From Trichosphaerium sp. ATCC 40318 (lineage: Eukaryota; Protista; Tubulinea), in assembly GCA_038496445.1 (NCBI GenBank), contig JALMLS010000256.1, positions 200,456 to 264,455 on the forward strand: a DNA stretch of 64,000 nt, in the 5' to 3' direction. The translations under genes were made by a program, and so were the position numbers. This document shows positions 3,625 to 44,711 of the stretch, in pieces (position 1 is the first letter of the stretch; each line of letters opens with the position of its first letter). The notes below the pieces were generated by a model that had not been told where the DNA came from, did not search any database, and was given only the letters and a program-made list of their open reading frames with translations.

Positions 3625-4036
3625 GCGTTGTACTTGAGAATAGAAATAAAATCTCGAATAGAAGTCATATTCCAATGTTTAACAGTTGTAACATATACTG
3701 TACACAAGTTAATTCTTCTTTTTTTCACAATGACGGAAGGTAATATAAAACGTAAGTCAGTTGCATAAGCTTCCTTTATTTCACTTTCACGACCTTGTCA
3801 CGTTTATAAGCTATTGTCATAGCCGTATACACCCTCATCAAGGTCGTGCATGATCTCTGTGCAGATTGTAGTGTCAGTTTTGGAAAACTTGACCTTGACT
3901 ATGTGGAAACGGTTGGACTGAAACTGGTACGTTTCCACATAGTCAAGGTCAAGCTTTCCAAAACTGCAACATTTCCATTTTTGTAACAAACATCTTTACA
4001 GAATAAATTAATGCTCATTCGCAAGTTACTTTAAAA

Positions 4037-5865
4037 AGTAAAGGAAATAGTTTTATTTACTTCAAATTTATAGTAGGGAACTCATGGACCAATAGCTTTA
4101 ACTGTTATTGATGCTGCCCCCAGCCTGTAATACATTCTACTGTAAAATCATTGCAATTAAATATGTAGACAGTATGAACATACTCTAATGCTTCTATACC
4201 CTCACGTGTAACATTGTTACCAACATGAATTGTATGAACACGTTTGAGTGCTTTGACTCCTTCATTTGTCACATCACAAAGCGTAATGTCAATCTCATGT
4301 ACTCCAGCAAGCGCTTTGATACCAATGTCAGTTACATTAGTGTAGGCCAGCTTAATTGTATGAACCCCTCTAAGTGCTATAATGCCTTCATCCGTCACTT
4401 GAGGACAGTTTGCAAGGTCTATATAATGAACTCCAGCAAGAGCTTTAATGCCTTCGTCTGTAACCTGATCGGAGCCTCTAAGAGTTATTGTATGCACTCC
4501 TGCAAGTGCTTTGATACCTATGTCTGTAACCTTAATGCAATCCTCAAGGTCAATTGTATGAACACCTGCAAGTACTTTTATACCTTCGTCTGTCACATGC
4601 TTACAACCCTCAAGGTCAATTGTATGAACCCCTGCAAGTGCTCTAATGCCTTCATCTGTAACATCAGAATAAGATAGATGAATAGTATGAACTCCTCCCA
4701 AAGCTGTAACACAATCATCTGCATTTTTCAATTGAGAAAGGTTAATTGTATGAACACCTGCAAGTGCTTTAATGCCTTCATCCGTCACCCAGTTACAAGC
4801 TTTAAGTGAAATGGTATGGACACCTTTGAGCGCTTTGACACCTTCATCTGTTATGTTATGACAATAACTAATATCAATGAAGCTAATTTGACAAGCACTT
4901 GCTAGTGCTTTCAGATCATTGTCATTAATGTGTACTTCTTCTATTTTTGGCTTTTTGATTTTGCGACATCCAGCTAATAATGAAAATATTGTGGCATCGT
5001 TGGTGTCTACTAGTTGAACAATACTATTATTCATCACACCATTGTACTGTCTTATCTTTAAGATATCCAGATATCGCTTGAGATAAACTCTTTTGTATCC
5101 AACAACATCATGAATGACATCAGCCATAAGACGACATGATTGAGCAACAGAAAACCTATCCTTATGGCCTGTGTACTCTAGAATACTCGAAATAACTTCA
5201 GGAGGGAAAGATATGATGTTTGATTCGTTGTGAAGTGATTTCAATTGGTCACTTTTGAAGGCAAAAAGTCAGATCAAAAGTATTATCAAGGCTTTTCAGG
5301 TTTTTTTTCAACGTACGTTTCTTGTTGTCTTCGTTTATGAGATACATACTTGCTTGACTGTATGCGGTCGTTAATTATTGTATTTGCTATTGTATCCACG
5401 TGTTCTTTGAGAAGTTCATCAAGTTGTTTTATGAGGCTTCCATTTACAATGTTAACAATGTCCTTGACTTGTTTTATGAATGGTTCGTGCTGGTTTTCTT
5501 TTATTTTGCCGTAAGCTTCCGTATGGTACTCGTGAAAGTAACTCAGAGCCTGGGATACTGTTAAACCGGAGAAATTCATTATTTGAAGGAGTGTGGAGAT
5601 ATTTTTTAAGTGGATTGAATGATTCCTCAAAACCTCCGACTGACATTGACTGGTCGCGTTCGTTTTTATACTGTCCAACTACTCATAGAAACCATATAAA
5701 AAACAAGGCTACACGGCTTTATTTCTTTGAGTACTTCAACGTTCAACAAGTGCCTAAAACAATAAAAAACAAAAATCAACAAAATTGTAGTCTTCACGGC
5801 ATTATGTCTCAAGGTACGCTAGAACTGAATTCTGAATGACTTAAACAATTGTAAATTAACCCTTC
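4037..5865 (-). repeat. Cassette C copy 1 (F-box-LRR gene plus upstream region)
   Basis: Near-identical inverted copy at ~17738-19200; more diverged direct copy at ~43160-44450. Confidence 0.92.
4105..5579 (-). CDS. N-terminal helical domain + F-box + LRR protein, two exons (intron 5252-5316)
   Basis: Exon 1 MNFSGL...QQE; GTACGT donor and CTGAC...AAG acceptor join in frame to F-box FPPEVISSILEY; about 11 LRRs of type VTDEGIKALAGVHTIDL; the intron sits at the same position in copy 3. Confidence 0.88.
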
Positions 5866-5879
5866 AACAAAACAGAAAT

Positions 5880-6790
5880 GGTATACAAACGTACAAATCA
5901 TGTAACCTTCAGGTCCAAGTTTTTTTGTACATGCTGTTTATTAACCGAGCTATCTTTAATGGAAGTGCTCGTTCTTTCCACTATAAACGGATATATGTAT
6001 CTAGAACTGTAATGACTATGGGTTATTATATCTTTAACCAAGACATTTGAATGATACAAAAAATGGTGAGTATAAATTTGCTTGCTATTGTTTTTTACCA
6101 TTGACACACATGTAATGATTCTTAACTTTACTATCTTCATACCATGAAGTGTAATCTCCTTCGAGTAAATCATTTACATAAGACTGCATTTGACCATTTT
6201 TATACCACATCATGTACTCTCCTTCTCGCTTTCCATTGACGTAGTGTGAATGAACAAATATTTGACCACTAATATACCAAAACTTACAGTCTCCTTCACA
6301 TTAACATAAAAATACTTTGACTTAAATCCACCACCTTTGTACCATTCATTGTACTCTCCTTGATATTCCTCATTTTTAACAAAATTACATTGTAGCTTTA
6401 ATTGACAATTTGAATGCCATTTTCATAACTTTCCTATATTTTTCCCATCTGTATAAGTACACTCCTTCTTCAAATTACCATTTTCATGCCACTCTTTTGT
6501 ACTTTCCTTCATACTCCCCATTGATAAAATAACAAACCTGCTTTAATTGCCATCGTTGTACCACAATTTAAACTCTCCATTACCTTTACCCTTATCCCAT
6601 ATGCTGTGTTCGACTAATTGACTATGGAAAAGCCAACGCTTATTTTAAGCCACTTGCCATGTTTTTTCAAGTCATAAGCAAATCTTGTTAGCTGTTTGTT
6701 TTGACAAAGAGGCTTTTAAGTATATTTCAAAGTCTAGATCAATTATATCATACTGTAGTTCTACTGGAAGGCATAATAGATGACACGTAT
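5880..6790 (-). pseudogene. F-box + MORN-variant (YwqK-like) repeat pseudogene
   Basis: LLCLPVELQYDIIDLD, NGEFKLWYNDGN, KEWHENGNLK and GEYNEWYKGG are interrupted by several stops and frameshifts; paralog of 16819-17660. Confidence 0.85.
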
Positions 6791-7259
6791 CTGATTTTAA
6801 AGTATTTATCTACTATTCGTTAGGTACTCTTTTAAGTACACTACTATACCTTTGGTTCCATTTGTGGGCGTAAATAACGAAGCTAGAGCGGATTAGCAGT
6901 CACGTGTTTTATTCCCTCAGCAGGTGAAAACTCGCACAAAATTGACTTTCTGAAATGCTTTGGCAGCTACTCGTGGACAGTTGTTGCAGTGAGTTTATTG
7001 AACGCACGTATTTTGATCTATTATCCTAAAATATCGTGAATGATAGAAGCAAGGTAGTGGCATGCTGTAAATCTTGCTTTAGTGTATGAAGTAACATGGG
7101 TTAAAATCTGTTGGAAGGTCATGCCTTTTCCCACTAGTGGTTAGGTTTATACTAATGCCAGTGCCTTAGGTATTTGGTGTTTAAGCCCTTTTGAAACAGT
7201 GAGCAAGGCTTTAATACTTGAGTATTAAAGGCAGAAAATTACGGTATTTTCTGTTGAAT

Positions 7260-8600
7260 GATCGTTTTTTTTTTTGATTGATTTGATAAAAGCCACTTAT
7301 TACCCAAGTCTAGACTTAACATCTTTATTTTATTTTATACAGTACACATACGTTGAGTTTACTTTGGAATACACATATGAGTGTTTCTTCATATACAACA
7401 GTACCTCTCAGTTTTCGTTTTTCGGCAACAGATCACATGAAAAACGCTTTAACTTCTCGCCAACAACCTCCACAACTCAATACGGAGTCAAATAATATAT
7501 TAGATAGGCAAACTCTGCACAGAAGTACGTTTCATTTAAACTACATATGAACGTAGTAGAATTCTAAACTGACTTTTTGTTAAGACGAGCCTTTTCATGA
7601 TACTGAGTACATGGTGAACGCAGATCAATCTCTTCAAGAACAACAAGAAGACTTTAAAGAGATGAAAGACTATGTCGGAAATAGACAGAAGTTGTATGGA
7701 GAAGCTATAAAGCCGGCACTCAAAACTAGTACTCCTCAAGTGACGTGCGTGAAAAAATATTTAAAAAAAAAACGCTTTAAAAAAACCGTTTAACTCTTTT
7801 TTTTGGCTAACCTTTTGCCTAGAAACAATAGAACGTGGTTTGAGTTCTTTACGGTATCTATTAGGGGTAATACTGTACCTGGTACTTTCAAATCTTATGA
7901 TCCCAAAAGCGAAAAAAGAACTTGTAAGTACCCTACTTTTTTACTTTGTTTTTATTTTGAAAGTTCAACTACACTTCATTGTTCTGATTATTATTTGTTG
8001 CTTTAGATTTACGTAAAAAGAGAAAGGTCAGTTTCAGAAAACGTGAGGCCTCTTTCATTAAGCGTAGAAAAACGGATAGTTCCTCAAAGGTTGATTCTTC
8101 CCCTGAAACTCCTAAACAGAGCGAACTTCATTTTGTCAATCAGAGCCAGGCCTCTCTTGAGGTATCTGAACAACAGAAGAATGATAAACAGAATAGTGAC
8201 GCTCTAGTGACAAATTCGTCTCCTTATTCCGATACTCTTACCGATTCTTGTCCTATTGCGCATCGTGAAACGTGTAAAACTGACAACAGAGTGAATCCTC
8301 CCTCTGATCAGGCTTCTCCTCTTGCTATGCCTGAACACGAAGATCAGTATCAAGAAAGCGCTCCTGTTGAAGACCGCAACGATGATGCAGGACCTACACC
8401 AATGGACCTAGAATGGCCTTCTTTGCCGGTTGATCCTTCCACGCCTCCACTATTACGAACAGATAGTCAAGAGATGTTCAATATACTCAGGCTTTCTCAA
8501 CACACGGATATTTTAACAGCTTGTGACAGTCCTCCTGGGTACCTAACGTTTTCTCAGTTTATGAGGAATGTCTAGAAAATCCGTCCTATAAGTTCATAAG
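7260..8600 (+). repeat. Cassette B copy 1
   Basis: Inverted diverged copy at ~41250-42612. Confidence 0.9.
7377..8575 (+). CDS. Orphan 4-exon protein with basic NLS-like block and acidic C-terminus
   Basis: Exons conserved in copy 2 with in-frame indels; RTWFEFF...PGTFKSYDPK; YLRKKRKVSFRKREASFIKRRK; probable 1-nt frameshift near 8560. Confidence 0.7.
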
Positions 8601-9195
8601 ACTCCAATGTGCAAAAAGCCTATACTTGTAATCGAAATAAACCTTACTTTTGAAAAATAGAGGAAAAGCAATTCACTAAGTAGTTACAAAGTATTCCCTT
8701 TGAACCTTCTCCTGCTAGCACCCGTTACACTAATAATGTGCTTGTGTATGGTTTAGGTTGTAAGGTATGCACGTGACAAACTAAAAATCAATAATCGTTT
8801 TGTGATCAACAAGACGGACAATTCCTATGTCCATGCATGTTGAAATTGTTAATTATCAAAATCTTGCCTTTGGGTTTGACCCAAAATAACACTACTAAGC
8901 CTGATTCACTTATTCTGAAACCCGTAAATGCCATAGTACTAATACAATTTTGGGGTTTACAACTACGAGATTCGGGTTTTGGGTTTGTGAATATTCGCTG
9001 ATCCGCGTCCCAAAATGGAATACTCGCTTCCCAACCCCTCCGTACACAGAAGTGTTGAAGAAGATTGTACAAGAAGGTTTATTTCTAACCCGTTAAAAGA
9101 AGTAGTCGCTTTCTTTTTGGAACTTTTCTGTGCAATGCCCGAAAATAGCCTCTGCTTAACCAAGACGTAATATAATACGACAAACAACACAAGCA

Positions 9196-11701
9196 ATGGC
9201 TGAAGCAAACTATACCGATACTGATAACCCTTATGATGAGAGTAGTGAAGATATCGCCACACCTCGATGTCCCAAGGCTGGTATTGTCGTATCTGGCGTG
9301 AATACAGTCTCAGAAAGCGTTTCATTTACTATTAGTGCTAGTGGAAGAGTAAGTTTGTTAATCTTAACTATTCCTCACTAACTGTTTACAAGACGCATAC
9401 AATTGAGCATAAAAAGGCGTCACTGTATCGTTTACACAAATGGGTACTAAAAAGCGTCTATTGCTTCTAAAATCCATCTAACTGTATTATAGATACACGC
9501 AACGTTCCCTAATGCGTCTCTATCATCATTTCCGTATACCTTAGAGCTTACACAAGAATGGATAGACTCAATTGTAAATGATAAGATTATTTCGAATTGT
9601 TTTGAAATTAGAACTTTTTTCGAATTTTACAAGTACGTCTTTTCTTTGTAGTCACGTGGTTTATTGAAGTTACTTTTTTAATAGAATAGAGTCTGTAGTA
9701 CCACGAAAAAATGGTGTACTTCATGTACATTTACTGAGAGTGTCAAAATTGCCAAAAGAAATGAACAGTACGCATGTTCTGTTTTTTCTTTTTAAATCGA
9801 AGAGTCATGTAGCTCACTTTCTTTGTAGAACTGCATTGTGAGCTTGAACAAATAGAACCTATTAACCCAAAAGAAGTTGATGTATGTTATAATAACGTTA
9901 TATCATGTCATACTGATTGATATTAGGACGCTTTTGGATTCATACCAAACAAAGTAAAGATTTTTACGAAAAAAACTGAAAGTGCAACAAACAGCCCAGA
10001 TTTCTTTACTAGTTTCAAGTTTGATATTGTCAATAGTGCAGTACCTGTAAGATAACTTCCTGAATTTAGGTTTCTTAATACTTTTAGATTCGATTGACAG
10101 TGTACTCAGGAAAGCAATCTTTGGGAAGCACAACACTTTGTGCAAACAATGCAATAAACAAATTAAAAAACTTCAAACTTCCTCTAAAGGTATACCTACA
10201 CAACGCCTAATATACGATATATTGGCGATACTTTGGTTTATTAACATGTTCAATAGGGTCATGGACCTCATGAGATTAGTGGTAGAGTTCAATTTAAACT
10301 CAAATTCTATCCAAACAATTCAATCAAAAAAAGCAGTTGTGACACATTAGAGCCAGTTGTTATGGCTCCTTCTAAGAAAGTTTACTATCCTGGACAACTG
10401 ATTAAAGGAAAAGTAACATTTAACCTTAATGAAGAGCACTTTAGAAAGATTAACAGAGTAATGATAGCTGTAAAAGGTACACAACCAAACAATTTAGCAT
10501 GTATTGACACTATCACTGGTTAGGTATGCAAATTGCAACTTCTAAAGAGAACCCATCGAAGTATGGTAACGGCAGAAGCATAGCCGAACATACGTCAACT
10601 AAGTAAGTGAATGTAAAATGCTTGATCAGTAAAGAAAACTGAGAAACTTATATCATTTTAGAAAAACATATACATTTATTTATGAAGCAGTACGAGCTTT
10701 TGACAATGCACAAAAAGTGTTAAAGGTATGAACCTCCCTTGTAGCTAGTTTTTAGAAACTATATAACTTGTAGTCTTCGTTTTTGCGGCTTATTGTGTAT
10801 AGGCTGGGTTTACAACAATACAATTTAATAGCGGATATCATATCCCGATTAATGCACCTCCTACTTCTGTAGTTCATGGTGTAAGAACGTATGAGAATAA
10901 AACCAAATATTTCATAGAAGTAAAGTGTTTTGACAGCAAAGAAAAGGAATGTGGCGTCTGTAAGTACCAATGTTGGAACTGTTTCTTTTCCTAACTTTTT
11001 CGTTCAGACTAACTTTTTTCTTTAAGACTCACAAGACTTTACTGTTCTTGCACCTACACCAAGAGATGAATTATTCCAAGATGCCACTTTCAGTAAGACT
11101 TGTGATAAAGGAAAAGTACTATTACATATTTCACAGCAATATATGACACCAGGGCAAACAATACAAGTAACAGTTGTAAGTCTTAGTTTATTAGTGAGTT
11201 TTCCTTCTTTTTTCTTATCTTGGTGTTTGTAGACAGCACCTCTGTTACTGAAATTGAAAGAACAATTCACCTGTAAGCTTAAGTGTTATAAGGGTGTGAA
11301 CGGAAAAAATATAAAGCAGGTTATTGGTTCTAAGAGAAGAATAGAAACAATGGATACAATTGAAATGAAATGGGAAGCAGCAAAAGAACACAACAAAGTG
11401 TACGTATTTTATCATGCTTTTCTTCACAATCTTACATTTGTTTCTTCCTCTAGTATGTCTGTATGCTTCCCTATCACGTTAAAAAATGGCAATGCTATGA
11501 TGAGTCATGGTGGTAACTTATCACCACTATGCAGTGTCTATTACATTGTAGAACTATCCATCCCAACAAAATCTGGGTACGTTTTTTAGCTATTGCCAAT
11601 TCTTCCTTCAACTTACTCTCGTATTCAGGAAGATAGAGTTCTCAGCGCCTGTAGAAGTATGTAATCCTTCATTTAAAACAGTGAAGAAAAACCACTCATG
11701 A
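9196..11701 (+). CDS. Arrestin-domain-containing protein with N-terminal extension, multi-exon
   Basis: KKVYYPGQLIKGKVTFNL...RVMIAVKG (arrestin_N); ISQQYMTPGQTIQVTV and SPLCSVYYIVEL (arrestin_C). Confidence 0.75.
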
Positions 11702-11976
11702 ATGCAGTCAAGACAACAAATACAAAATGTATACCACATGCGACACAGGCGAAATAAACACCAATAAATTATTTATACGTAAACCACCTCCACTCACAAG
11801 TCAACATAGCCAATGTATAAGAACCCACCCAAATTTACACATAACGGATTTTCAAAATCAATTGAAGAAGAGGCACTAGCGAGAAGCTAAAAAAATTTTG
11901 TGCGAGAACTACGAAAATTTTCAGAATAAGTCATACTTTTTTATTCAAAACAAACCAATGGTTTGTTAGAATTTTA

Positions 11977-14335: not shown

Positions 14336-14709
14336 CTCCAGAGTTGTTGTTAAAAGAATTTAATCAAAGCGGTTAAGTTTTTAGTAGATTTGTGGGAAAA
14401 AAGGCTATGTTTGCCTGAAAGGCTTACTATCCTTTCTCGCCTTGCTTTTCTTGCTAAGCTGCTTGTCGCTTTGAAGGAAAAATACTTGTGCAACCAGCAC
14501 GCGCTCATGAGCAACAAGTCAGTAAACTAATATTAAATACACTTTACTAAAGTACAACGCTTACAAAATGGACAATGGATAATTTTTCTACATAATCCAC
14601 ACGCAACATGGACTTGATTTTCTTTAGCGTATGGAAGACAACCGACGTCGTTTATCGACATGCTTAGTTGGTAAATTACCACTTCGTTTGCCGCCTGTTT
14701 TTTGATTCT

Positions 14710-16536: not shown

Positions 16537-16818
16537 TTGTATGGCTTACTTTCAGTGCATCAGTCAATGGCGGCAAAATTTTCGAATATCTCTCGTTAAG
16601 ATAGGCCTAACTTAATATCAAATTCCAGAGTACAATTGAACTTGACTGCGTTGCTCTCTCACCAAAAGCATTACGAGGCCGAAAGGTCGGAAAGCTGAAA
16701 TAAATTGTTATTACGTGAAGTACAACCCAAAAAACGGAACGACAACACCTCATGTGAGGTTATAAAACTACTGTATTTTGAGCCTAATCATTTACCAATG
16801 CCTGACATATATATTCGT

Positions 16819-17660
16819 TTACTGAACTATCCTACCGTCCACGTACATACGAAGAAAAGCAAGCTTTCCATCATCTGTCCAAACTTTATATTCACCATGT
16901 AATTCACCTTCAATGTAAGTACGTTGTGCGTGAATTTGTCCATTTTCATGCCATGAAGTGTACTCGCCAGTTTCTTCATCATCAACATAGGTGCAATGCG
17001 TGCGGAGCTGTCCGTTTTCATGCCATTGCTTATACTCACCATTTTTTTTATCATCAACTAAGCTGGTGTGCACATCGAGTTGTCCGTTCTTAAACCACGA
17101 CTTAAACTCTCCATTCCTCTTACCATCTACAATCGTACATACAACACCAAGATTTCCGTTCTCATACCACGATTGGTACTCACCCTCGAACTCTCCATCA
17201 ACCAATACTCCTTTTGATCCAAGTCTTCCATTCTCATGCCATGTTTTGAACTCTCCGTTTTTTTTCCCATTGCTGTAAGTACACTGCATTTTAGTCTGCC
17301 CGTTCTCATAAAACTGCTTGTATTCGCCATTCACCTCACCATCACTAAAAGTAAATTGGAGAGAAAGCTGTCCACTCTTATAAAACGTATTGTACTTGCC
17401 AGCTATTATACCATCAACCATATAGTATTGGGAAGCCACTTGACCATCACTGTACCATGTTATCCATTTTCCATTGCATTTTAGTTTGCTGTTGTAATGT
17501 GTACTTATTGCTGCTCTTTTAGACAACACGTGGAATTTATTGAATATTTCTTCGTCTAGCTCACAAATAAAACGTTGAATATCACATGGAATATCTAATA
17601 TTGTAGTAGGGATATCGTCAGGCACGTTGGCCAATGGTTCTGTCGACAATGAAATATCTA
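16819..17660 (-). CDS. F-box-like + MORN-variant repeat protein; open frame but no in-frame ATG at its 5' end
   Basis: ILDIPCDIQRFI followed by about 9 repeats of GEYKxWHENGQL; the frame begins after an AG acceptor with an in-frame TAA just upstream, so exon 1 is missing or unresolved. Confidence 0.85.
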
Positions 17661-17737
17661 CAAAATGTTAAACAATTTTTACCAGTATGAAGCTGGATTA
17701 GTTTTAACTTGCACAATACGCAAAACAGCGTGTTTCG

Positions 17738-19200
17738 TTAAGGGTTAATTTACAATCAATTGTATTGATTGTCTAAGTCATTCAGAAATTCAGTTCTAGC
17801 GTACCTTGAGACATAATGCCGTGAAAGACTAAAATTTTATTGATTTTTGTTTTTTTATTGTTCTACGCGCTTGTTGAACGTTGAAGTACTCAAAGAAATA
17901 AAGGCCGTGTAGTTTTTGTTTGTTTATCTGGTTTCTATGAGTAGTTGGACAGTGTAAAAACGAACGCGACCAGTCAATGTCAGTCGGAGGTTTTGAGGAA
18001 TCATTCAATCCACTTAAAAAATATCTCCACACTCCTTCAAATAATGAATTTCTCCGGTTTAACAGTATCCCAGGCTCTGAATTACTTTCACAAGTACCAT
18101 ACGGAAGCTTACAGCAAAATAAAAGAAAACCAGCACGAACCATTCATAAAACAAGTCAAGGACATTGTTAACATTGTAAATGGAAGCCTCATAAAACAAC
18201 TTGATGAACTTCTTAAAGAACACGTGGATACAAAAGAGTTTATCTCAAGCGATATCCGGATATCTTAAAGATAAGACAGTACAATGGCGTGATGAATAAT
18301 AGTATTGTTCAACTAGTAGACACCAAGGATACCACAATATTTTCATTATTAGCTGGATGTCGCAAAATCAAAAATCCAAAACTAGAAAAAGTTCATGTTA
18401 ATGACAATGATCTGAAAGCACTAGCAAGTGCTTGTCAAATTAGCTTCATTGATATTAGTTATTGTTATAACATAACAGATGAAGGTGTCAAAGCGCTCAA
18501 AGGTGTCCATAGAAAGGTTGATTGTATGAACACCTTTGAGTGCTTTAACACATTCGTGTGTAAGCTGTCCACAACCCTCAAGGTTGATTGTATGTACTCC
18601 AACAAGTGCTTTAATGCCTTCATCTGTCACCTGGTAACAAGATTTAAGTGAAATGCTCAATGGAACAATGTAGATGATTGTGTTAAAGCTTTGGGAGGAG
18701 TTCATACTATTCATCTATCTTATTCTGATGTTACAGATGACGGCATTAAAACTCTTGCTGGAGTTCATTTTATAGACCTTGAAGACTGTCCTCAAGTGAC
18801 GGATGAAGGCATTAAAGCTCTTGCTGGAGTTCATTATATAGACCTTGAGAACTGTCCTCAAGTGACGGATGAAGGCACTATAGCACTTAGAGGGTTCATA
18901 CAATTAAGCTGGCCCACACTAATGTAACTGACATTGGCATCAAAGCGCTTGCTGGAGTAGTTTTGTGATGTGACAAATGAAGTCAAAGCACTCAAACGTG
19001 TTCATACAATTCATGTTGGTAACAATGTTACACGTGAAGGTATAGAAGCATTAGAGTATGTTCATACAGTCTACACATTTAATTGCAATGGTTTTACACA
19101 AGAATGTATTAACAGGCTACAAGCAGCGTCAATAATATTTAAAGCTACTGGTACATGAGTTCCCAACTATAATTTGAAGTAAATAAAACTATTTCCTTAC
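17738..19200 (+). repeat. Cassette C copy 2 (inverted relative to copy 1)
   Basis: Reverse complement of 4037-5865; homology ends about 15 nt after AATAAA. Confidence 0.92.
18044..19158 (+). pseudogene. F-box-LRR pseudogene
   Basis: 297-bp deletion at 18225-18233 removes the intron and F-box; 18511-18655 is inverted; further frameshifts follow. Confidence 0.9.
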
Positions 19201-19360
19201 TTACCGATTTTATACCATTGCATCCATACACCATGTCGTTCAAGTTTGTCGTTGTAGTGTGTGTTGGTAGCAGCTTTTAGATAGTGTATCTTTTAGATAG
19301 AGTATGAAACATTTCACGTTAGCCTACGTTTGCAACTAATACGGTAACAATTGAGTTTTT
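19200..19360 (-). pseudogene. N-terminal relic of an F-box-MORN gene
   Basis: FHTLSK...AATNTHYNDKLERHGVWMQWYKIG matches FHVLSKRAAISTHYNSKLKCNGKWITWYSDG of 16819-17660; truncated at the cassette C boundary. Confidence 0.75.
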
Positions 19361-24799: not shown

Positions 24800-25240
24800 T
24801 TTCTTTCTTATTCTTTGGTTGTCGGTTTCTGTACCAGAGTTGGTGTCATACCACCATCTTGTACCCTCCGTCAAGCTTACCATCGCATGATAATATTTGT
24901 CATATCATTGATCACTGTTACCAGCTCTTGTATTCTCCATGTCTACAAGAAACAAGGATTTTTGGAACAGACAAGTTCATTCAAAAAAAGATCCAATAGT
25001 AAATAATATGGCTCCTAACAAGTGTTGCCCATTCTATAATTGACGAATAGGACCAAAGTACACACCACTGAAGGTATAAAAAAATAAGGCTTTCACCAGA
25101 GTACCTCAACAGTCAGCTGTCACTAAAGTACTTGTATTTTTCGCATTTACTTTGAAGCAAAATAAATTTGTAGACTGAAACAAACATGGCGTCCACAGTT
25201 CGGCATCACCTCAATTAAAACTCACATTCATATTGATTAC
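24800..25240 (-). pseudogene. Heavily degraded MORN-repeat relic (partly duplicated at ~40850-41110, + strand)
   Basis: Fragments RHGEYKSW*, DGKLDGGYK, *NGQ and GDAELW; LIEGDDKLW and KYKYYP in the second copy. Confidence 0.55.
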
Positions 25241-25360
25241 TAGGTATACAAAAAGGGAGCAAGAAACTCTTGTTGCAAAGGATTTTCTTCTTGCAGCAAA
25301 ATTTTTTTTTTGTTTTTTTTTTTGTTTTTTTTTTTGTTTTTTTTTTTGTTTTTTTTTTTT

Positions 25361-25630
25361 TTACATTCTTGGGCTTCCGCCTTCGAATGCCATTTTTGCT
25401 AGATCAATGTCATAGCTGGATATCATTACGATATTTGATACGCCTGTAGGTGGGTAGTAGAGATCTTCTACCTGTGGGTCCCAAGTCAGAGCGTATGTGT
25501 AGTTTGGTCTGGTGTGAACCAGGATGCTTTTAGGGACTGTGACCGTGACTTTAATCACTAATGGTCTGCCCAGGAGAGAATTGTATTTTTTACGAGCGTA
25601 CTTTCGCACTGCTCGGAGTAGTCTTGACAT
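25361..25630 (-). CDS. 89-aa basic orphan protein (copy 1)
   Basis: Intact ATG-TAA ORF, one amino-acid difference from 40471-40740; more GC-rich than its flanks. Confidence 0.55.
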   Translation of the reverse strand: MSRLLRAVRKYARKKYNSLLGRPLVIKVTVTVPKSILVHTRPNYTYALTWDPQVEDLYYPPTGVSNIVMISSYDIDLAKMAFEGGSPRM

Positions 25631-25987
25631 GTCAAGCAGAAGTATAGATATTGTAGTTGTAGTATTCGTATGCTTCCACTAGACAAAAAAATCGATTTTG
25701 CTTTTAACCAAGTAATTTCTTGTTGCAAAAAAATTGTGGTTTTGCTACGGTTTTTGAGAAAACCGGTTCAATGCGTTGTACATGGTAATTGAAGCATAAC
25801 AAGTCCAATCGATGGTTGATAAGGGGATTTCTATGTTGGGTTTTAAGATATGGAGTTATGAAGTAAATCGGGATTGTAATGTTGAGAAACAAATGTGAAA
25901 AAAAGTGAAATTCGAAAAGAGAAATAAATGTAATTTACACCGGTTTCTACGTTCCCGTATGGTATCTTCCAGGCGTATTTTGATACT

Positions 25988-26500
25988 CATCTATATTTAA
26001 CAGTCAATACAAAATCGTTTGAATCTGAAGAACCAAGAACTTTGCGTAATCAACCTTTATTTACTAGTGGTACGTTATTGATGTTAAAATAAGATGTTTC
26101 CGTGTTGTTTTGATCCAAAACAAGGTTGATCTTTCTGTTGTAGCTTCCCTCAAGCTCTTGTCGCTCAAAATATCCCTCGATTTTATAACGTAAACAAATC
26201 ATAGCGTCGGTGACGGTTTGAACATGTAACGTGCCTTTTCGGTTTCAAAAAAACGTGATCGTACCGTTACCGATATTCTGCTGATTTTTGCTCTCAAACA
26301 AGCTTGTATGTAATGTGAGAGATAGCCGTATAAACTGTAACCTTGTTGGCGCTCTTTCAGTTCAAAATAGGATTTTTCTTTTCTTTTGTCGACTCTGACG
26401 CATTAACAAGAGCCACAATGCGTACTTCTTAGATTCACGATACTTTAAAGCTCTTGCAAGCTGTTTCTGCACCAACAACAGTGATCACTGTTGAAAACGC
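25988..26500 (-). CDS. Possible spliced gene of unknown function in cassette A (frameshifted in copy 2); limits uncertain
   Basis: Open segments YFELKERQQGYSLYGYLSHYIQA and GTLHVQTVTDAMICLRYKIEGYFERQELEG are separated by short GTAC...AG candidate introns. Confidence 0.35.
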
Positions 26501-27291
26501 GTAAGCACGGCTCATCAGCTTGTTGTGATCATAGAATATACAGCTACAATCGACAGACTTGCCATTCGATCGAATTCGAGGACTTTTACAGACTTTTCAA
26601 GAGATACGTTTATGTGCGTACCAATATTTAGAAGACACGACATTACCAATTCTACAGAAACCAGAACCATAAAGCAGACAAAACATTTTCTCCGTACTTT
26701 GAATGCCGAAAGAGTTATACTGTGTAGCTTTTAATTTCCATTTTCGTACTTTTAGAAACATTGTTTACTAAAATAGTATGGCAGATACAAAGCGTCATTG
26801 TACCCTTCAAAATTACCTACGGCGTTAGTGTATAGCGGCAACGTACAAACTTCTGTTTTTATCACACTAAATCAAACTTTGATTAAATCACGTTTTAGCA
26901 ACCGAAATACGCCCGAATATGCCGGAAACATCAAGATGCTGACCTCAGAACTGTATTTTATATATTTAACATGTTTCTTGAGCGATTAATGCGCTACTGT
27001 GTAAACAGCGTTCTGACTTTTGTTTGTGTGAAGTTCTTAGCTTTGTTTTGCTTTTTTCCCCAACAGACTTAAATAAACTAAAAATGCAACTTCAATTCGA
27101 TTCTTAACACGCTGCCACGTTAACCAGTAAAAGGGCATTGCTCTTAAGGATGGATTCATTGTTGTTTGCGTTTATCAACATTTCTCCTTGTACTCTACAT
27201 CGTAAATTATCGGCTCCAAACTGCACAGTATATACGTACGTAGCCATTAATATCTAAAACAAAATACAAGACGCAACTCTTCCTCTCAAAA

Positions 27292-27804
27292 ATGCCTTTT
27301 CGATCATCTCTCAACAACAAAACGAAACAACCTGCCTCCCAAAGCCTTTCTGAATTTGCGTGTAAAGGATTGAAGCATAAAACTGTTCTCATGGTTCTAA
27401 AATCTACGGTGATACAGCTCGACGCCTTGCATCAAGCAGGATATGGCTACATGCGCATCAACGGACAAAACATAAAAGTCCACAGGAAAGAACACTGCCT
27501 GATGCTCACTGGTTCGCGAAACAACGACAAAAATACTGGCTACGGCTCCTTATCACTTGAAGATACAAAAACTCACGATATTCACCAACTCGGATGCTTG
27601 GCAACCTGGCTTGCACTTGGAGGTGAATTTGATATTGTACAAACCATGGACAAGCAACAACAGCTTCATTCTCTAAAAAAAACTTCTGCTTCAACCACAT
27701 TGATTAACTTTGTATCTACGTGCTTCAATGCAACCACGACAACGCGAAACCTTTTAGACAAACTTGAAACTGTACAAGTAAGAAAGTTAAAGAGTAAAAA
27801 ATAG
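27292..27804 (+). CDS. Intronless truncated kinase-like (pseudokinase C-lobe) ORF
   Basis: QLDALHQAGYGYMRINGQNIKV resembles the catalytic loop region; DIHQLGCLATWL resembles the DxWSxG helix; HRD and DFG are absent. Confidence 0.55.
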   Translation: MPFRSSLNNKTKQPASQSLSEFACKGLKHKTVLMVLKSTVIQLDALHQAGYGYMRINGQNIKVHRKEHCLMLTGSRNNDKNTGYGSLSLEDTKTHDIHQLGCLATWLALGGEFDIVQTMDKQQQLHSLKKTSASTTLINFVSTCFNATTTTRNLLDKLETVQVRKLKSKK

Positions 27805-31655: not shown

Positions 31656-31954
31656 TATGTACACCAGAGCGCTGCAGTGGTATTATTAAGTCTGCTTGCC
31701 TAAAAAAACTGGACGAAAATGTTTTTCTGGTGTATTGTTTTTCCGCTATATCAACAAGCACCTACAGCTGACGCTAACTTGCATGCTTTCAAGCACTGTT
31801 CAAGTGTATTTCCTTGTTTGATAAAACGCCGTAAACCTCCGCAAAGCCATAGATCGTTAGGAATCGCAGTATTACAACGTATTAAAAATACGTATTAAAG
31901 TTTATTAGATATACACAAGTGTTAATTAGGTAACAGGCATTGTTACGCTCGCAT

Positions 31955-36099: not shown

Positions 36100-37626
36100 T
36101 TGTTTAAAAGCTATAATTGTTGTATGGATAATAATGAAGTAATAAACAAGACTTAAATTCAAAAGTAATTTAGTTACTTTTAGGAATGAAAAGCTCCGCG
36201 TTTTGAACCCGACTTTTTTGCGGTACCTTTTTTTTTCTGTCACGTGATTTTCGACAACTACAACAAATGTACATTTATCTAAATTGTTTGTAAACGTTTT
36301 GAGTTTAATTCGGAACAAGTTTTATTACTAGCTTTGTAGTTTTTGTACAAAATACGTTGTGATGCTTTGAAGCACGTGAACCCGCTTTCGTTCGTTTTTT
36401 ACGAAACTTTTCAAACTTACCCTCAAGAAATTTTATTTCTCGCAAACAAGACGATAGCTTATTCTCTTGCGCGGTAAACATTAGATTTTTATCACCAACC
36501 GTTTTTTATTTTGTTTGGACTTTCGGGATTAATCCACTTTGAAAAAAACTTCAAAAAAAAAGATCTTTGGATTTTTACAAAGCTTGTCTTCTCGCTTCTG
36601 TAAATCGTAGATCTTTACAAATACTCCGTTCCAACCAAAGAAATACCTGCTTTTAACCAGTTAATTATAGGCCTGTTGTGATTGATACTAATTACCAACA
36701 GCATCAGCGTAAGAACCTGTCACTGTTGTTTCGGAAAAGAACAGTCGGTTAGATCTTTTTTACTTGGTGCACATAGTATTGCAGTTTCATCAGCAACAAC
36801 ACAAACAGACACAAATTAAACACAATAATACCTATAAAAGCAACAGCAAGAGTGTGAAAAACTGGCCAGACGTATGTTGGTAGCGTTAATCAACCATCTC
36901 CCTAAAAGTAACGAGAGCCGAATTATTTTGTTGTTTAAAGATTGTTCGATGCCGCCCTACACGCTACTTACAGGTGGGGTCAATATCAAAGTACAACAGC
37001 ATAGCACAATGAAAGGTCTTGCAGGATCGACATTACTAAAAAACTTGGAAAACTATTTAGTTCCAATACGAAATCAACAAAAAAAAATGTGGTAATGTCT
37101 AAAACCAATCGATAAAGATAAGCGTGTTAAAAAAAGTTGATGGTTCAAGGAGTTAACCTAAAGCTTGAGTTGTGATGCTATTCAGACCTTCTTTTTTTGA
37201 CAGCCAATAGAGGAAAACCTCCAAACTAGAGTTATTAGTCACGGTAGATATGAATACGACGAAAATAAGTAAATGGCACGAAAAACAGTTTCAATGGATT
37301 GCAAACAGCTCTTTACTACTTCTTACGCGTAGAAAACACTATACGTAAAGCCAAATCAAGCATGAACGAGTTTTCGTTAACTTTTCACCTAACGGGAACG
37401 TATGACGTATATTCTTTGTGATAAAACTCGTGGGTCATAATACGGACACACTGCACGAAATGTTGGTTCGCAATGGCATGAACTGGTTTTGTTGATAGAA
37501 AGCTTGCTGTCTATAGCATTGTAAGGTTGTACGTATTGGTTTTAAACACAAACATCAAATCATGTGCCTACTTGGCAGTCGTTTGAAGTCAATTTATTTT
37601 TTTGAAAGCAACTATCTTACTTTACA

Positions 37627-38427
37627 ATGTTGCGTACGTCTATTCGTTTCGGTGGACTAGCTCGTGTGGAGAGACGACACAGAGGGAGGAGATACACTAA
37701 ATATGACGCTAAAAACTTGTATTGTGACACCACAAAAGTATTACTTGACGCAAAGAAGCACAAAGGTCTTACCTTTGCTGATCTGGGCAAAGTACTTTAA
37801 AAATAACTGTTCACTTTTTTTTTCCAACGAAACGGCGTCATCTCACGTTTTTTTATTTTGTACGTAGGCTATGGATAGGAGCGAGATGTTTGCAGCTTCT
37901 GTAGTTTATAGGCAAGCTAGTTGTACCCAAACAGATTCTGACAAGCTCCTTAAAGCGCTTGGTAAGGATAAACGACTAAAAAGCGAAACATTAAAATCAG
38001 ATTGATGTTAACGGTTTTTTTTGAAGGAATCTCTGAAGACCAACTTCCAGAATTTACCAATAGACTTACTGACTACCCTACAAAGGGACTGGCATCAACA
38101 GATTGCAATGATCCAGCAATCACGAGGTTTTTTGAGATGATAAAGGTTAGAGATCAAAAAAAAAAACCTAAGACATTTCTAACTGTTTGGTTTGGTTAGA
38201 TTTACGGGTTTCCTCTGAAAGCTGTAATGCATGAAAAGTTTGGTGATGGCATTATGAGCGCTATTGACTTTGAGGTTCACATGACAAAGGTAAAGTTCAC
38301 CATTCGTGAATTTTTTTCTCGTGTTGACTCGAACTTCTCATTGAAAGTGTTGTAGGAGAAGAACCCAAATGGTGATCGCGTGAAGATAACATTAGATGGT
38401 AAATTCCTTCCTTATAAAAAATTCTAG
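37627..38427 (+). CDS. cynS: Cyanate hydratase (cyanase), 5 exons
   Basis: [16 protein letters not shown]; DPAITRFFE; [23 protein letters not shown]; [15 protein letters not shown]. Confidence 0.96.
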
Positions 38428-39113
38428 TGTACATGTCAACAACTAGATACCAATAAACAAAATAACTTTATCTTGGCTTTAGCTTCATAGGTATTATGGT
38501 TTATCATTGACCAATTCTAACTCAATAATAGACTTCAATTTATCTAGCTTTGCCTTGTATTTCTTGATTGCACTTATCAAATGGTTGTTCGATCTCCTCA
38601 TCTTCTTCACTGCTAGCGTACTCTTCATCACGTCTTTCTAATTCTCGTGTGAAATAATCCAAGATTTACGTACTTGTGTTAAATTCCATGTAGACATTCA
38701 AAAAACTTAGATAGCAACTAAACCAAAAAAACATTATTATCTTTTTGCTTAAGAATGACTACTAATGCTGTACCTCTCGTAGCGTATACGTCACCATAAA
38801 AGCCATGCTTCACTTCACAATAGGAGTACTCGAAAGTGCCATTTGAATCCAGTGTGGTGTTTGCACTCTAGATGGAATTCCCACGTTTTGAACCGGAAAA
38901 CTGGACAGAGCATCGTGAGTAAGTGCCATTACGCTACATACTAGGTTAACTTATATTTAGCAACAGCAAGCCCCACACAAATCTATGGTGACTATAGATA
39001 CTATCAGCATTGACGTACGTGGGTGTTACAGTTGCTGTAATGCTAGGACACTAAAATTAATCACATTCCATTACAGGATTTGACGAACTCAAGTTAAGTG
39101 TACAATTAGAACC

Positions 39114-41115
39114 ATGATCGGAAAGGCATTTTTGAGAAGAAGACTTGCGTCTTGTATTTTGTTTTAGATATTAATGGCTACGTACGTATATACTGTGTAG
39201 TTTGGAGCCGATAATTTACGATGTAGAGTACGAGGAGAAATGTTGATCAACACATACAATAAGAATCCATCTTGAAAAGCAATGGCCTTTTACTGGTTGG
39301 CGTGGGCAGCATGTTAAGAATCTAATTGCATTTTTAGTTTATTTAAGTCTGTTTCTAAACGCAAAAATTGAAATTAAAAGCTACGCAGTATAACATTCTA
39401 CAATACAGTCACTTTACAAAGAGACAACTGCGTATTACAGCTTCTACAGTGCCTCACCAGTCTAACTACGTTACCCAATATCAAAGACGCACACTTATCA
39501 GACTTTGAAAGTCTTAAAAAGTTTGTTAATACCCAAAGGCGTAAACCAGTCACCATGTAGATCACGGAAAGCGCTTGTATATTCTATGTGGGCCATGCTT
39601 ACGCGTTTTCAACAGTGATCGGTGTTGTTGGTGCAGAACCAGCTCGAAAGAGCTTAAAAGTATCGTGAATCTAAGAAGTACGCATTGTGGCTCTTGTTAA
39701 TGCGTCAGAGTCGACAAAAGAACAGAAAAATGCTATTTTGAACTGAAAGAGCGCCAAAAAGGTTACAGTTTATACGGCTATCTCTCACATTACATACAAG
39801 CTTATTTGAGAGTAAAAATCAGTGGAAAATCGGTAACGGTATGATCACGTTTTTTTGAAACCGAAAAGGCACATTACATATTCAAACCGTCACCGACGCT
39901 ATGATTCTTTTACGTTATAAAATCAAGGCATATTTTGAGCGACGAGAGCTTAAGGAAGCTACAACAGAAAGATCAACCCTTTTTGGATCAAAACAACACG
40001 GAAAACATCTTATTTTAACATCAATAACGTACAAGTAGTAAATAAAGGTTGATTACGCAAAGTTCTTGGTCTTCAGATTCAAACGATTTTGTATTGACTG
40101 TTAAATATAGATGAGTATCAAAATACGCCTGGAACATCCCATACGGGAACGTAGAAACCGGTGTAAATTACATTTATTTCTCTTTTCGAATTTCACTTTT
40201 TTTCACATTTGTTTCTCAACATTACAATCCCGATTTACTTCATAACTCCATATCTTAAAACCCAACATCAAAATCCGTATATCTACTATCAATTGTCCAC
40301 GATATGCTTCAATTACCATGTACAACGCATTGAACCGGTTTTCTCAAAAACCGTAGCAAAACCACAATTTTTTTGCAACAAGAAATTACTTGGTTAAAAG
40401 CAAAATCGATTTTTTTGTCTAGTGGAAGCATACGAATACTACAACTACAATATCTATACTTCTGCTTGACATGTCAAGACTACTCCGAGCAGTGCGAAAG
40501 TACGCTCGTAAAAAATACAATTCTCTCCTGGGCAGACCACTAGTGATTAAAGTCACGGTCACAGTCCCTAAAAGCATCCTGGTTAACACCAGACCAAACT
40601 ACACATACGCTCTGACTTGGGACCCACAGGTAGAAGATCTCTACTACCCACCTACAGGCGTATCAAATATCGTAATGATATCCAGCTATGACATAGATCT
40701 AGCAAAAATGGCATTCGAAGGCGGAAGCCCAAGAATGTAAAAAAAAAAAAAACAAAAAAAAAAACAAAAAAAAAACAAAAAAAATTTTTGCTGCAAGAAG
40801 AAAATCCTTTGCAACAAGAGGTTGTTGCTCCCTTTTTTTATACCTAGTAATCAATATGAATGTGAGTTTTAATTGAGGGTGATGACAAACTGTGGACACC
40901 ATGTTTGCTTCAGTCAACAAATTTATTTTGCAGTAAATGCAAAACACAAAAATACAAGTACTACCCTTAGTGACAACTGACCGTTGAGGTACTCTGGTGA
41001 AGCCATTTTTTAGATTACTTCAGTGTGATGTACTATGGTCGTATTTGTCACAATTATAGAATGGGCAACACTTGTTAGGACCCATATTGTTTTAGTGTTG
41101 AATTTTTTTTGGATG
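39114..41115 (+). repeat. Cassette A copy 2 (inverted; 305-bp internal deletion)
   Basis: Reverse complement of 24975-27307; breaks 5 codons into the kinase-like ORF. Confidence 0.93.
40471..40740 (+). CDS. 89-aa basic orphan protein (copy 2)
   Basis: Intact ORF; 3 nucleotide differences from copy 1 seen, 2 of them synonymous. Confidence 0.55.
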   Translation: MSRLLRAVRKYARKKYNSLLGRPLVIKVTVTVPKSILVNTRPNYTYALTWDPQVEDLYYPPTGVSNIVMISSYDIDLAKMAFEGGSPRM

Positions 41116-41247
41116 GTCAAATACAAATAAAATGTAATTGAACACATGTGTTCATTGTTGTCAAGTTTATTGGTAATTAGGCTACACGATCAAAGAATTT
41201 TATTTTGATTGAGTACAACAGTGTTACAAGACCTGTGATTGGCTCTT

Positions 41248-42501
41248 TTACATTCTTCGGCGCCTGCGGATATTAATTTTAACCGTAGGATCGCTTAAAT
41301 GTTCTTCAATAAACTGGTCGCATGATAGATTTCTAGGAGCACTCTCACAAGGAGTACAAATATCCATCATGTCATCTTCACAGCCTCCTAGTATGTCCAA
41401 CACCTCTTGTCTCTCAACTGGTACCTCTAAAGGCGCTACTGGTTGTTCCAGAACACTGCCTTGCTCATCAAAGAGACCAAAAGGTAATTCTAGTTCCATG
41501 GAACTTGTGGGGTCTTTGCTATCAAGTGGATGCTGCTTTTCATCTTGATACTGACTATCTTCCTGTTCAGGCAAAACTAGAGGAGAATACTGATCAGTGG
41601 GATACACTCTGTTGTCAGTTTTAGACCGATGTGCAATAGGACAAGAATTTGTGAGAGCAGAAGAAGGATTTGTCTCTAGAGCGTTGCTATTCTGTTTGTC
41701 ATTCTTCTGTTCTTCAGATATCTCAAGAGAGGTCTGACTCTGATTGACAAAATGAAGCTCGTTGGTCGTCTTAGGAGTCTCTGTGGAGCTATCCGTTTTT
41801 CTGCGCTTTATGAAAGAGGCCTCGCGTTTTCTGAAACTGACCTTTCTCTTTTTACGTAAATCTAAAGCATAAAATAAGACACAAGTTTGAGAGCCACGTA
41901 AAAAACTTGATTGATCGATATTTTGTCGATTTTCGGAAATAGATTAAGTACGTACAAACTCTTTTCTCGCCTTTGGGGTCATGTGATTTGAAAGTGCCAG
42001 GTTTAACCTCAGCCTGAAAAGGATTGATAAAGAACTCAAACCAAGTTCTATTGGTACTAAGCAACAGTTAGCTAGATTGACGGTTCGAACCCTTTTTTTT
42101 TTTTGGTATTATTTCACGCACGTCACTTGAGGAGTACTTGTTTTGAGCGCTGGCTTTATAACTTCTCCATAGAACTTTGGTCTATTTTGTACAATGGTAT
42201 CTTTTTCATCTTTAACGTCTTCTTGTTGTTCTTGAAGAGATTGATCTGGGGTCACCACGTACTCTTCAGTATCAGGAGAAGGTTCGTCTTAACAAAAAGT
42301 CAGTTTAGAATTCTACTACGTTCATAGTGTAGTTTAAATGAACGTACTGTAGTGTTGATGTATCTGCTGGTTGTCTGGTTCGGTATCCAACTGCGGATAG
42401 AGGTGTGGAGGTTGTTGGCGCGAAGTTAAAGCGTTTTTCATGTTATCTGTTGCCGAAAAACGAAAACTGAGAGGTACTGTTGTATATGAAGGAACACTCA
42501 T
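41248..42501 (-). CDS. Orphan NLS/acidic protein, cassette B copy 2
   Basis: Same exon structure as 7377-8575; RTWFEFF, LRKKRKVSFRKREASFIKRRK. Confidence 0.7.
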
Positions 42502-43159
42502 ATGTATTCCGAAGTAAACTCAACGTATGTTTACTGTAGATAAAATAAAAAGAAGAGGTTAAGTCTAGTTTGGAATAAGTGGGCTTTTTTTGGTTATCAA
42601 TCATTAACGATTAGACTTTCATTGGCTGGTTTTACAATCATTATTTTCATTAAAATAGTATTTGACAAACAAGTAGTAACTATCTTTTTTACTGAGAGAA
42701 TGTAATGTGTTGTTGCGATTTAGTTAAGTGCAAGTTATGTAATGTTACACGTTTACATCGGATTTGACCCGAAAGTTCGCTATTTTGGGGAAGCTACAAG
42801 CCTGATTTTTCGGGATTGTCAACATAGGTAGCCTTTTGCAACTCTGCAAGCTAGTTATATCATTAGTGTACCTTATGGAGTACCTTATGGAATACTTTCC
42901 GTGAGCATAAGAACTGAAAGTCATGCACGTGCTGCTAATTGTGAGTAGGTTTAACGTTAAAATAGCATAGAATTATTACACATAGAGAATTAAATTACTA
43001 AACACTGGATTGTTCTCCAAAACCAGGCGAAAGCTGAGCTTTATTTCAGGCAGCTAGTTGTTACAAAAGTATACTCCATTCCCTATACTGGTGGTTGTTC
43101 TATATAAAATAACACTCTTATCACAACTATCATTACAAAGGTTTACCTAACATTTTACA

Positions 43160-44366
43160 CATTCACTGACGCTGCTCTTAGCCTTGTAACACTTTCCTAT
43201 GTAAAACTCTGTAGTAGATTGTACGTATGTACAATATGCACATACTCTAATGCTTCTATACCTTCACCTGTCACATTGTTACCAACATGAAGGGTGTGAA
43301 CACGTTTTAGTGCTTTGACTCCTTCATTTGTCACATTGCAATCAGTAATATCTATCTCGTGTACTCCAGCAAGTGCTTTAACACCTTCGTCTGTCACCTT
43401 ATTACACTTGGAAATATCAATTGTATGCACTCCTGCAAGCGCTTTAATGCCCTCATCTGTCACATTCTTACAATACTTAAGGTTGATTGTGTGAACTCCT
43501 GCAAGCGCTTTAATGCCCTCATCTGTCACGTGCTTACTAAAAGCAAGGTTGATTGTATGAACTCCTGCGAGTGTTTAATGCCTTTATCTGTTACTTGAGA
43601 ACAAGAGTCAAGATCGATTGTATGCACTCCTGCAAGTGCTTTAATGCCTTTATCAGTGATACGATGACAATAACTAAGATCAATGAATCTAACTTGACAA
43701 GCACTTGCTATTTCCTTAAGATCACTATCATTGATACCTAAACGCCTTGATGGTATTATTTTACGACATCCAGCAAGTAATGAAGATAATGTGTTATTTG
43801 TGTAGACCATATGAACCTTGCTGTTATTTATAATCCCTCTGTAGTGTCTTATCTTCCAGATATCTGCGTATCGCTTGAGATGAACTTTTTTGTATCCAAC
43901 AATATCATGAATAATATCAGCCATAAGATGACAAGATTGAGCAACAGAAAACCTATCTTTATGATCTGTGAACTGTAGAATATTCGAAATAACTTCTGTA
44001 GGGAACAATAGAATGTTTGATTGGCTGTACAGTAACGTTGATTGTGTTCTATTGTAAGAGTAAGTAAAAACAAAATGTTTTTTTTTTTTTTTTTTCAACG
44101 TACGTTTCTTGTTGCTTTAGTTTATGTGCCACAGACTCGTTAACTTGTAGTGCTCGGTTATTTTTCGTGTTAATTATTGTATCCACGTGTTTTGAAAGAA
44201 GTTGATCAAGTTGTTTTGTCAGGCTTTCGTTTACAACAGTAATGACACGCTCTACTTGTTTTAGGAATGTTTCGTTTCGTTTTGCCATTATTTTGCCAAA
44301 AGCACCTGTGTGGTGCTCACGAAAGTATGTTAGAGCCTGATCTACTGATAAACCTGAGAAATTCAT
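43160..44366 (-). pseudogene. F-box-LRR, cassette C copy 3 (frameshifts near 43570 and 43200; may be intact if these are assembly errors)
   Basis: MNFSGLSVDQAL exon, conserved intron, FPTEVISNILQF F-box, GVHTIDL LRRs. Confidence 0.85.
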
Positions 44367-44711
44367 GATTTGATGCTTAAATAATCTCGACGTTTTTTGT
44401 CTAAGTTATGACTGACCTTGACTGATTATGTGTAGGTTTTTTATACTGTGACAAGTTCTAATGTAACATAGCAGGTTCAATAACCTAAAGTACATTATCT
44501 AACAAAGCCACCTAAGTTTAAATCTTGCACAACCTTAAACTTGAATATGCACAAAATAATATCTTCTTAACTTGTTCAACAAGTAGAGTGGCTCCTTTAT
44601 GGTAAACTTGAACATTAAATAAACAAGTATAGTATGTTTCTAGCTATCAAGCATATTTATTTGTACAAAGGGGACATTGCAATTGATTAACTTGTGAGTT
44701 TGTCTCTTTTT

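Follow-up and report, generated by a model that had tools for sequence, protein, structure and literature searches.

We analysed a 64,000-nt stretch of DNA from the amoeba-like protist Trichosphaerium sp. ATCC 40318 (contig JALMLS010000256.1, positions 200,456 to 264,455; hereafter the window), in which four islands share gene-sized units: F-box genes with leucine-rich repeats (LRRs; family C), MORN-repeat genes, and two orphan families, A and B. We propose that the islands are probably the outcome of birth-and-death evolution in a lineage-specific host gene cluster, driven by local segmental duplication, gene conversion and pseudogenization. Synonymous divergence (dS) between copies ranges from 0.02 to 0.74, the copies C2, C3 and MORN1 are broken, identity between copies changes in steps along their length, and paralogues of family C (P0001, P0002, P0003 and P0121) are present in the transcriptome of the same organism.

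Repeats were detected by self-BLASTN and six-frame tblastn of the window, with E-values down to 0.0. For domains, the 245 stop-to-stop open reading frames (ORFs) of at least 62 aa between 1 and 58 kb were searched against Pfam, and C1, B1 and B2 were studied as spliced models, one exon at a time and by reference. Copy counts for each family are counts within the 64-kb window, and the comparison set beyond it was one transcriptome. The window is eukaryotic DNA with a GC content of ~36–37% and short exons. A 1,615-nt transcript (L003) from the MMETSP transcriptome JGI 3300016894 matches window positions 46778–48391 colinearly at 99.9% identity with one indel, and the window therefore belongs to the organism of that transcriptome or to a near-identical strain.

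An earlier, sequence-only reading of this DNA had described four islands built from shared modules, and self-BLASTN and tblastn recovered them in the order and orientation it gave: C (-), MORN (-) and B (+) in island 1; MORN (-), C (+) and a MORN relic (-) in island 2; A (-) in island 3; and A (+), B (-) and C (-) in island 4. The classes of divergence that it distinguished were likewise borne out. C1 and C2 are 93–100% identical in most 60-nt windows and A1 and A2 are 92.7% identical across 1.5 kb (BLASTN), while B1/B2 and C1/C3 are at 77% and 73% nucleotide identity, respectively.

A family of F-box/LRR genes with one intact and two broken copies

Family C, which combines an F-box with LRRs, has three copies in the window:

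C1 block: 4036–5874, minus strand; intact F-box/LRR gene, with the block ends taken from the alignment with C2
C2: 17731–19202, plus strand; recent broken copy, apparently of C1, from BLASTN, identity windows and dS
C3: 43154–44405, minus strand; lightly broken, old paralogue of C1 in which Pfam finds F-box and LRR_6

The C1 gene, as read from the sequence, has two exons (5579–5317 and 5251–4105) separated by a 65-nt GT-AG intron, and its four transcriptome paralogues run uninterrupted across the splice junction. Pfam found both an F-box and LRR_6 in C1 and C3, in agreement with the F-box–LRR class of the sequence-only reading. The F-box and F-box-like scores were 21.4 and 24.3 bits for C1 and 24.7 and 24.3 for C3 (gathering cut-offs 20.5 and 24.3), and LRR_6 matched with E-values of 2e-28 and 7e-18, respectively, in arrays of 66-nt units. 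In C1 a family-specific region of ~90 aa is followed by the F-box and then the LRRs. The paralogues have this same layout and are 50–55% identical to C1; P0001 was traced to JGI sample 3300016894, and P0002, P0003 and P0121 bear the same source labels. Since at least four proteins of the same organism’s transcriptome share the layout of C1, we regard C as a dispersed host family. Another MMETSP protein of Trichosphaerium sp. ATCC 40318 (P0048) was not close to it. On the strength of domain content alone, family C proteins are presumed to be FBXL-type substrate receptors of SCF (Skp1–cullin–F-box) ligases, which would bind Skp1 and recruit substrates.

The two other copies are of very different age. 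C1 and C2 differ by a dS of ~0.02, with dN/dS of ~1 or more, and C2 has suffered one internal deletion that removed most of the F-box, so that just the final part of the domain is kept, as well as one short internal inversion and three in-frame stops. A first BLASTN impression of mosaic identity between C1 and C2 (76–97%) was discarded, as it was due to repeats aligned out of register and to rearrangement. C3 is 59–62% identical to C1 at the amino acid level, with a dS of ~0.74 and a dN/dS of ~0.31. It appears to have been kept by selection through most of its history, and today has a single frame change and a single in-frame stop.

The LRR arrays (4225–4677 on the plus strand, and the equivalents in C2 and C3) bear long antisense open frames of 150–160 codons, which we ascribe to repeat composition. 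A hairpin lies at 3875–3966, ~70 nt past the 3’ end of the C1 block; its 37-nt arms are 97% complementary around an 18-nt loop, and it is the sole long hairpin of its kind between 3 and 45.5 kb. A protein with LRRs that is 34% identical to C1 is encoded on a gene-dense, apparently intronless contig of 10.6 kb and 33% GC (L002, from Logan SRR22923166), where the neighbours of its gene include Peptidase_C1, SWIB and ankyrin genes.

MORN genes and an F-box remnant

Four regions were considered as MORN genes or their relics:

MORN1: 6085–7140, minus strand; decayed MORN_2-repeat gene, at the 5’ end of which is a truncated F-box remnant of the C type (tblastn, Pfam)
MORN2: 16822–17667, minus strand; open frame of 282 codons with seven MORN_2-type motifs (Pfam E 1.6e-30)
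MORN relic: 19200–19292, minus strand; N-terminal region of a third MORN gene, which stops at the edge of the C2 block
Claimed relic in island 3: 24819–24944, minus strand; tblastn E 0.75–3.9, not significant

The sequence-only reading had proposed a class of F-box–MORN genes. MORN_2 repeats are indeed present in both MORN genes, which are 30–37% identical at the amino acid level by tblastn, but the F-box survives only as a remnant in the decayed MORN1, where it was detected with an F-box profile built from family C (E 1.2e-4). In MORN2 and 14 of its relatives, no F-box was found by Pfam (E up to 10 for MORN2), with the C-family profile or by hhalign (probability 0.05%). The repeat part of MORN1 contains at least one frame change and two in-frame stops. 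The two relics that had been claimed fared differently: the one at 19200–19292 resembles MORN2 with 48% amino acid identity (tblastn E 2.6e-5), and the one in island 3 found no support (best E ~0.75).

The C2 block sits between the 5’ end of MORN2 and the MORN relic. In MORN2 the first in-frame ATG comes at about codon 82, and the ~90 nt upstream contain no ATG at all on that strand; the arrival of the C2 block seems to have cost the gene its start. Apparently this arrival also replaced most of one gene of a MORN tandem pair. Together with the contrast between the intact C1 and the broken C2, C3 and MORN1, this accords with the earlier suggestion that F-box genes are repeatedly made and destroyed here.

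Two orphan families, A and B

Family A spans ~2 kb, is mostly non-coding, and includes an ORF of 89 codons. It has two copies in the window, one of which adjoins a longer ORF:

A1: 24978–27307, minus strand; block of ~2.3 kb, with the 89-codon ORF at 25361–25630 (-) followed by an A-rich run
A2: 39114–41115, plus strand; likely copied from A1; its 89-codon ORF is at 40471–40740 (+)
ORF adjoining A1: 27292–27804, plus strand; 170 codons, no family assignable

In the alignment of A1 with A2, the family consists of two homologous pieces, between which lie unrelated spacers of unequal length. The 89-codon ORF had been listed as a protein module. The ORF is present in both copies, but as a protein it found no homologue in 5.8 billion proteins, IMG/VR or PDB and its predicted fold is of low confidence (predicted local distance difference test, pLDDT, 49), so it may be non-coding. 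One end of A1 overlaps the upstream region and first codons of the ORF at 27292–27804, while at the left end of A2 only the first few codons of that ORF are represented. Because the end of A thus falls inside an ORF that continues only at A1, A1 is the likely source and A2 the copy. This adjoining ORF had been labelled a pseudokinase, a label that we could not uphold: it matched neither Pfam nor PDB and its predicted fold had a pLDDT of 35. Directly after the stop of the 89-codon ORF, at 25302–25362 in A1 and 40739–40784 in A2, is an A-rich run with single C interruptions, whose length differs between the copies by one 12–14-nt unit.

Family B is an orphan with introns and a basic stretch resembling a nuclear localization signal. 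Both copies are intact:

B1: 7310–8575, plus strand; four exons, 305 codons, coding sequence 7437–8575, with 127 nt upstream included
B2: 41248–42568, minus strand; four-exon paralogue of B1, coding sequence 42441–41248

B1 has no internal stop, and its GT-AG introns are 60, 78 and 83 nt long. The two copies have three GT-AG introns in common (60–94 nt, with consistent phases) and differ by a dS of ~0.46, with a dN/dS of ~0.56. No Pfam family or IMG/VR relative was found for B, and a search for homologues of B2 among 1.84 billion representatives returned none but one marginal low-complexity match. Inside the nearly identical 5’ region of the two copies (B1 7437–7584, B2 42441–42288), a patch of ~45 nt where exon 1 ends shows strong divergence and a length difference of 6 nt; on its two sides are an identical intron and a 5’ untranslated region (UTR) with 94% identity.

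Ends of the copied segments and steps in identity

What had looked like cassette edges differs between old and young pairs. The alignable part of the old pairs, B1/B2 and C1/C3, starts a short way upstream of the ATG (127 nt in the case of B) and ends at about the stop codon. We take these edges to mark the limit of selective constraint, as would be expected if nothing but constrained sequence persisted. The young C1/C2 block begins ~290 nt upstream of the ATG and extends ~70 nt beyond the stop, ending ~15–20 nt after an AATAAA. A single large palindrome comprising all pairs was also considered, and was rejected, as the symmetry centres differ and C1 and C3 are in direct orientation.

Identity within a pair is uneven. 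In A, 3 of 431 positions are mismatched in the core around the ORF, against 85 of 1037 elsewhere (Fisher p 3e-10); in B, the figures are 7 of 184 for the 5’UTR and intron 1, against 53 of 148 for introns 2 and 3 (p 1.6e-14). Since neutral sites in these stretches differ far less than do the synonymous sites of that gene pair, we interpret them as gene-conversion tracts between copies 14–34 kb apart, which fits the proposal of the sequence-only reading that the copies recombine.

These differences also bear on whether the near-identical pairs could be artefacts of assembly, that is, collapsed or chimeric haplotypes or repeats. The junctions of the islands are those of the assembled sequence. 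A duplicated misassembly would nevertheless be expected to be identical, and the copies differ by 3–13%, with numerous indels, rearrangements inside the copies and a spacer that has been replaced, each in unique flanks; moreover, the transcript mentioned above matches the adjoining region colinearly. We therefore consider an artefact extremely unlikely.

Tests for a mobile element or an integrated virus

The sequence-only reading had taken the islands for fragments of a large element or endogenous virus, or for cargo mobilized in trans, had noted no visible mobility gene or terminal repeat, and had named a search for a helicase, reverse transcriptase, recombinase or capsid gene as a check. Applied to the 245 ORFs between 1 and 58 kb, this search found none of them, nor any transposase or integrase. 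At the ends of A and C, we found no terminal inverted repeat or long terminal repeat in boundary alignments or in an inverted-repeat scan (arms at most 400 nt apart), no resemblance in the alignments to Helitron-type termini, and no short direct repeat common to the flanks of A1, A2, C1 and C2 that could represent a target-site duplication. The absence that the earlier reading had remarked on is thus confirmed, and its attribution of the islands to a mobile element or virus is not favoured by what follows.

Gene-sized units that recur in varied order and orientation could also be non-autonomous mobile cassettes that lack terminal repeats and depend for their copying on machinery from another part of the genome, and an autonomous gene is not expected inside such an element. 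The C1/C2 block, in addition, is nearly one unit from promoter to poly(A) signal. Yet the ends of A and C show none of the terminal features sought above, and those of the old pairs are coding limits, not common termini. Just two or three copies of each family are seen in the window, all inside 40 kb. The arrival of C2 deleted host sequence, which fits repair-mediated insertion and not transposition. Nor do the copies look like processed retrocopies: both B and C have introns, all three of which are retained in the B copies; the C block includes its upstream region and has no terminal A-run; and the A-rich run of family A is internal. We keep this explanation alive because of the extent of the C block and because the two young events, as described below, share a distance and an inversion, but we judge it unlikely.

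Alternatively, an integrated giant virus (Nucleocytoviricota) may have eroded and left the islands as its fragments, or the genes may have been recently acquired from such a virus. One IMG/VR contig of 388 kb, which also carries a gene for an ATP-dependent DNA ligase, encodes a MORN_2 protein that is 39% identical to MORN2. Of the Trichosphaerium sp. genes that were scored as giant-virus transfers, ~40% have introns, and no domains are commoner among them than F-box and MORN (PMC10521059). The viral likeness of MORN2 may, however, reflect the type of repeat, because equally close relatives occur on bacteria-like contigs: its relatives on environmental contigs are 30–45% identical to it, and some of these contigs carry Adhesin_E and MFS genes. 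The metagenome scan with MORN2 returned nothing above 45% identity and no match from JGI sample 3300016894, which may not be part of that collection. None of the 245 ORFs contained a giant-virus hallmark (capsid, polymerase, packaging ATPase or primase-helicase), and A, B and C found no relative in IMG/VR, C not even with its family alignment as query. B and C have introns, and ordinary cellular genes separate the islands. GC content is the same, 36–37%, inside the islands and in the flanks. Only islands 1 and 2 show a raised tetranucleotide distance (0.23–0.27, against a background maximum of 0.22), which we attribute to their internal LRR and MORN repeats. A viral origin of the islands therefore seems improbable.

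Introns, host-like composition, paralogues in the transcriptome, and the lack of terminal repeats and target duplications together lead us to favour the ordinary dynamics of a host gene family.

A proposed course of duplication and decay

Under birth-and-death evolution, the families in play (FBXL-type F-box/LRR genes, MORN-repeat genes and the two orphans) would be fast-evolving and lineage-specific. Gene-sized segments of 1.3–2.3 kb would be copied within the same 40 kb by segmental duplication at the DNA level, with non-homologous joints. In an old event, a pair of B and C was probably copied from island 1 to island 4, or in the reverse direction. Two recent events would have taken C1 to C2 and A1 to A2, each 12–14 kb away and inverted. 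Redundant copies would then decay, and meanwhile correct one another patchwise by gene conversion. At times the joints may fuse or destroy neighbours, as suggested by the C-type F-box in MORN1 and by C2 in the place of most of a MORN gene.

Several observations weigh against this account. The young C block corresponds to about one transcription unit, which is tidier than is usual for a random pair of breakpoints. Both young events are inverted and at 12–14 kb, as might be the case if one mechanism lay behind them. In the same islands, three or four unrelated families occur together. The ORF cut by the end of A, at 27292–27804, cannot be shown to be a gene. Copies were counted, and their ends compared, within this window and one transcriptome, and the window’s own A, B and C genes were not found among the transcriptome proteins, where the adjoining PhyH gene is; the activity of A, B and C is thus unproven.

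One can also envisage a process that copies whole transcription units, from promoter to poly(A) site, as DNA, inverted, into existing F-box/MORN islands, either as cassettes mobilized in trans by machinery from another place (cellular or belonging to a resident virus-like element) or by programmed template switching that diversifies SCF adaptors. We consider such a process highly improbable; if it did operate, it would be a new way of moving genes.

Other features of the window

The ordinary cellular genes among which the islands lie were recognized between 1 and 58 kb by Pfam matches to sulfatase, GIDA/MTO1, AlkZ-like, haspin-like, choline transporter, 7tm_3, Hikeshi-like and PhyH domains. 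The following were placed by matches of individual ORFs:

Sulfatase: near 1 kb
Haspin-like: 15.8 kb
GIDA/MTO1: 20.5–21.8 kb
AlkZ-like: 22.6–22.9 kb
PhyH: 46.8–48.3 kb

In the genome, the PhyH domain lies in a single ORF of 509 codons (46773–48302), and in transcript L003 it was called as a 189-aa and a 337-aa ORF that overlap; there is therefore a one-base length error in either the genome or the transcript. No Rfam family and no tRNA was found in the window.

At 58642–61100 and 62239–62508, a 15-nt unit is repeated ~164 times. It reads as Pro-Pro-Thr-Thr-Glu on the plus strand, has a GC content of ~50% and is open on both strands, and it is followed by shorter repeats of 12 or 24 nt of the Thr/Ala/Pro type. 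The array looks like a mucin-like coding repeat. Between 12001 and 14000 the AT skew is 0.25, well above that of the remaining window, and the ORFs in this segment have no Pfam match.

Comparison with known systems

Gene-capturing non-autonomous transposons such as Pack-MULEs and Helitrons copy gene-sized pieces without an internal transposase. The islands resemble them in the size of the pieces and in having no transposase inside, and differ in that the termini and target-site features of these elements were not found at the ends of A and C.

For Trichosphaerium sp. ATCC 40318, the draft genome has a GC content of 37.7% and a mean intron length of 75 nt (PMC10521059), similar to what we see here. 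Among its genes scored as giant-virus transfers are the same two domain types as ours, which stand singly among cellular genes and frequently have introns (PMC10521059). Unlike them, family C had no viral relatives in our scans, and the direction of transfer cannot be inferred. In amoebal giant viruses, repeat-domain gene families expand by duplication, and both F-box and MORN repeats are mentioned in that account (PMC5753266); the copies described here, in contrast, are part of a cellular chromosome, contain spliceosomal introns and are bordered by cellular genes on either side. F-box/LRR expansions, as part of an expansion of ubiquitination-related gene families, are also described for the Parachlamydiaceae, in a paper that speaks of birth-and-death (PMC4209131). 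Those genes are bacterial and intronless, whereas there is no bacterial context here.

F-box and MORN genes in such genomes have previously been read as viral imports or mobile cargo, and the window advises caution in this respect. We regard it as a clean, small-scale case of F-box receptor turnover in an amoeba-like protist, with duplication, patchy conversion, domain swapping and decay all within 40 kb. Its closest parallel is the birth-and-death evolution, or ‘genomic drift’, of F-box genes in plants and mammals, where lineage-specific receptors arise by local duplication, copies of very unequal age adjoin, many are pseudogenes and constraint is relaxed (PMC3030570, PMC3719486, PMC3984280). 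The islands differ from those superfamilies in their protist host and in the inclusion of two orphan families among the duplicated units. Furthermore, the recent copies here are inverted and 12–14 kb apart instead of in tandem, and one of the relics is a chimera of F-box and MORN repeats.

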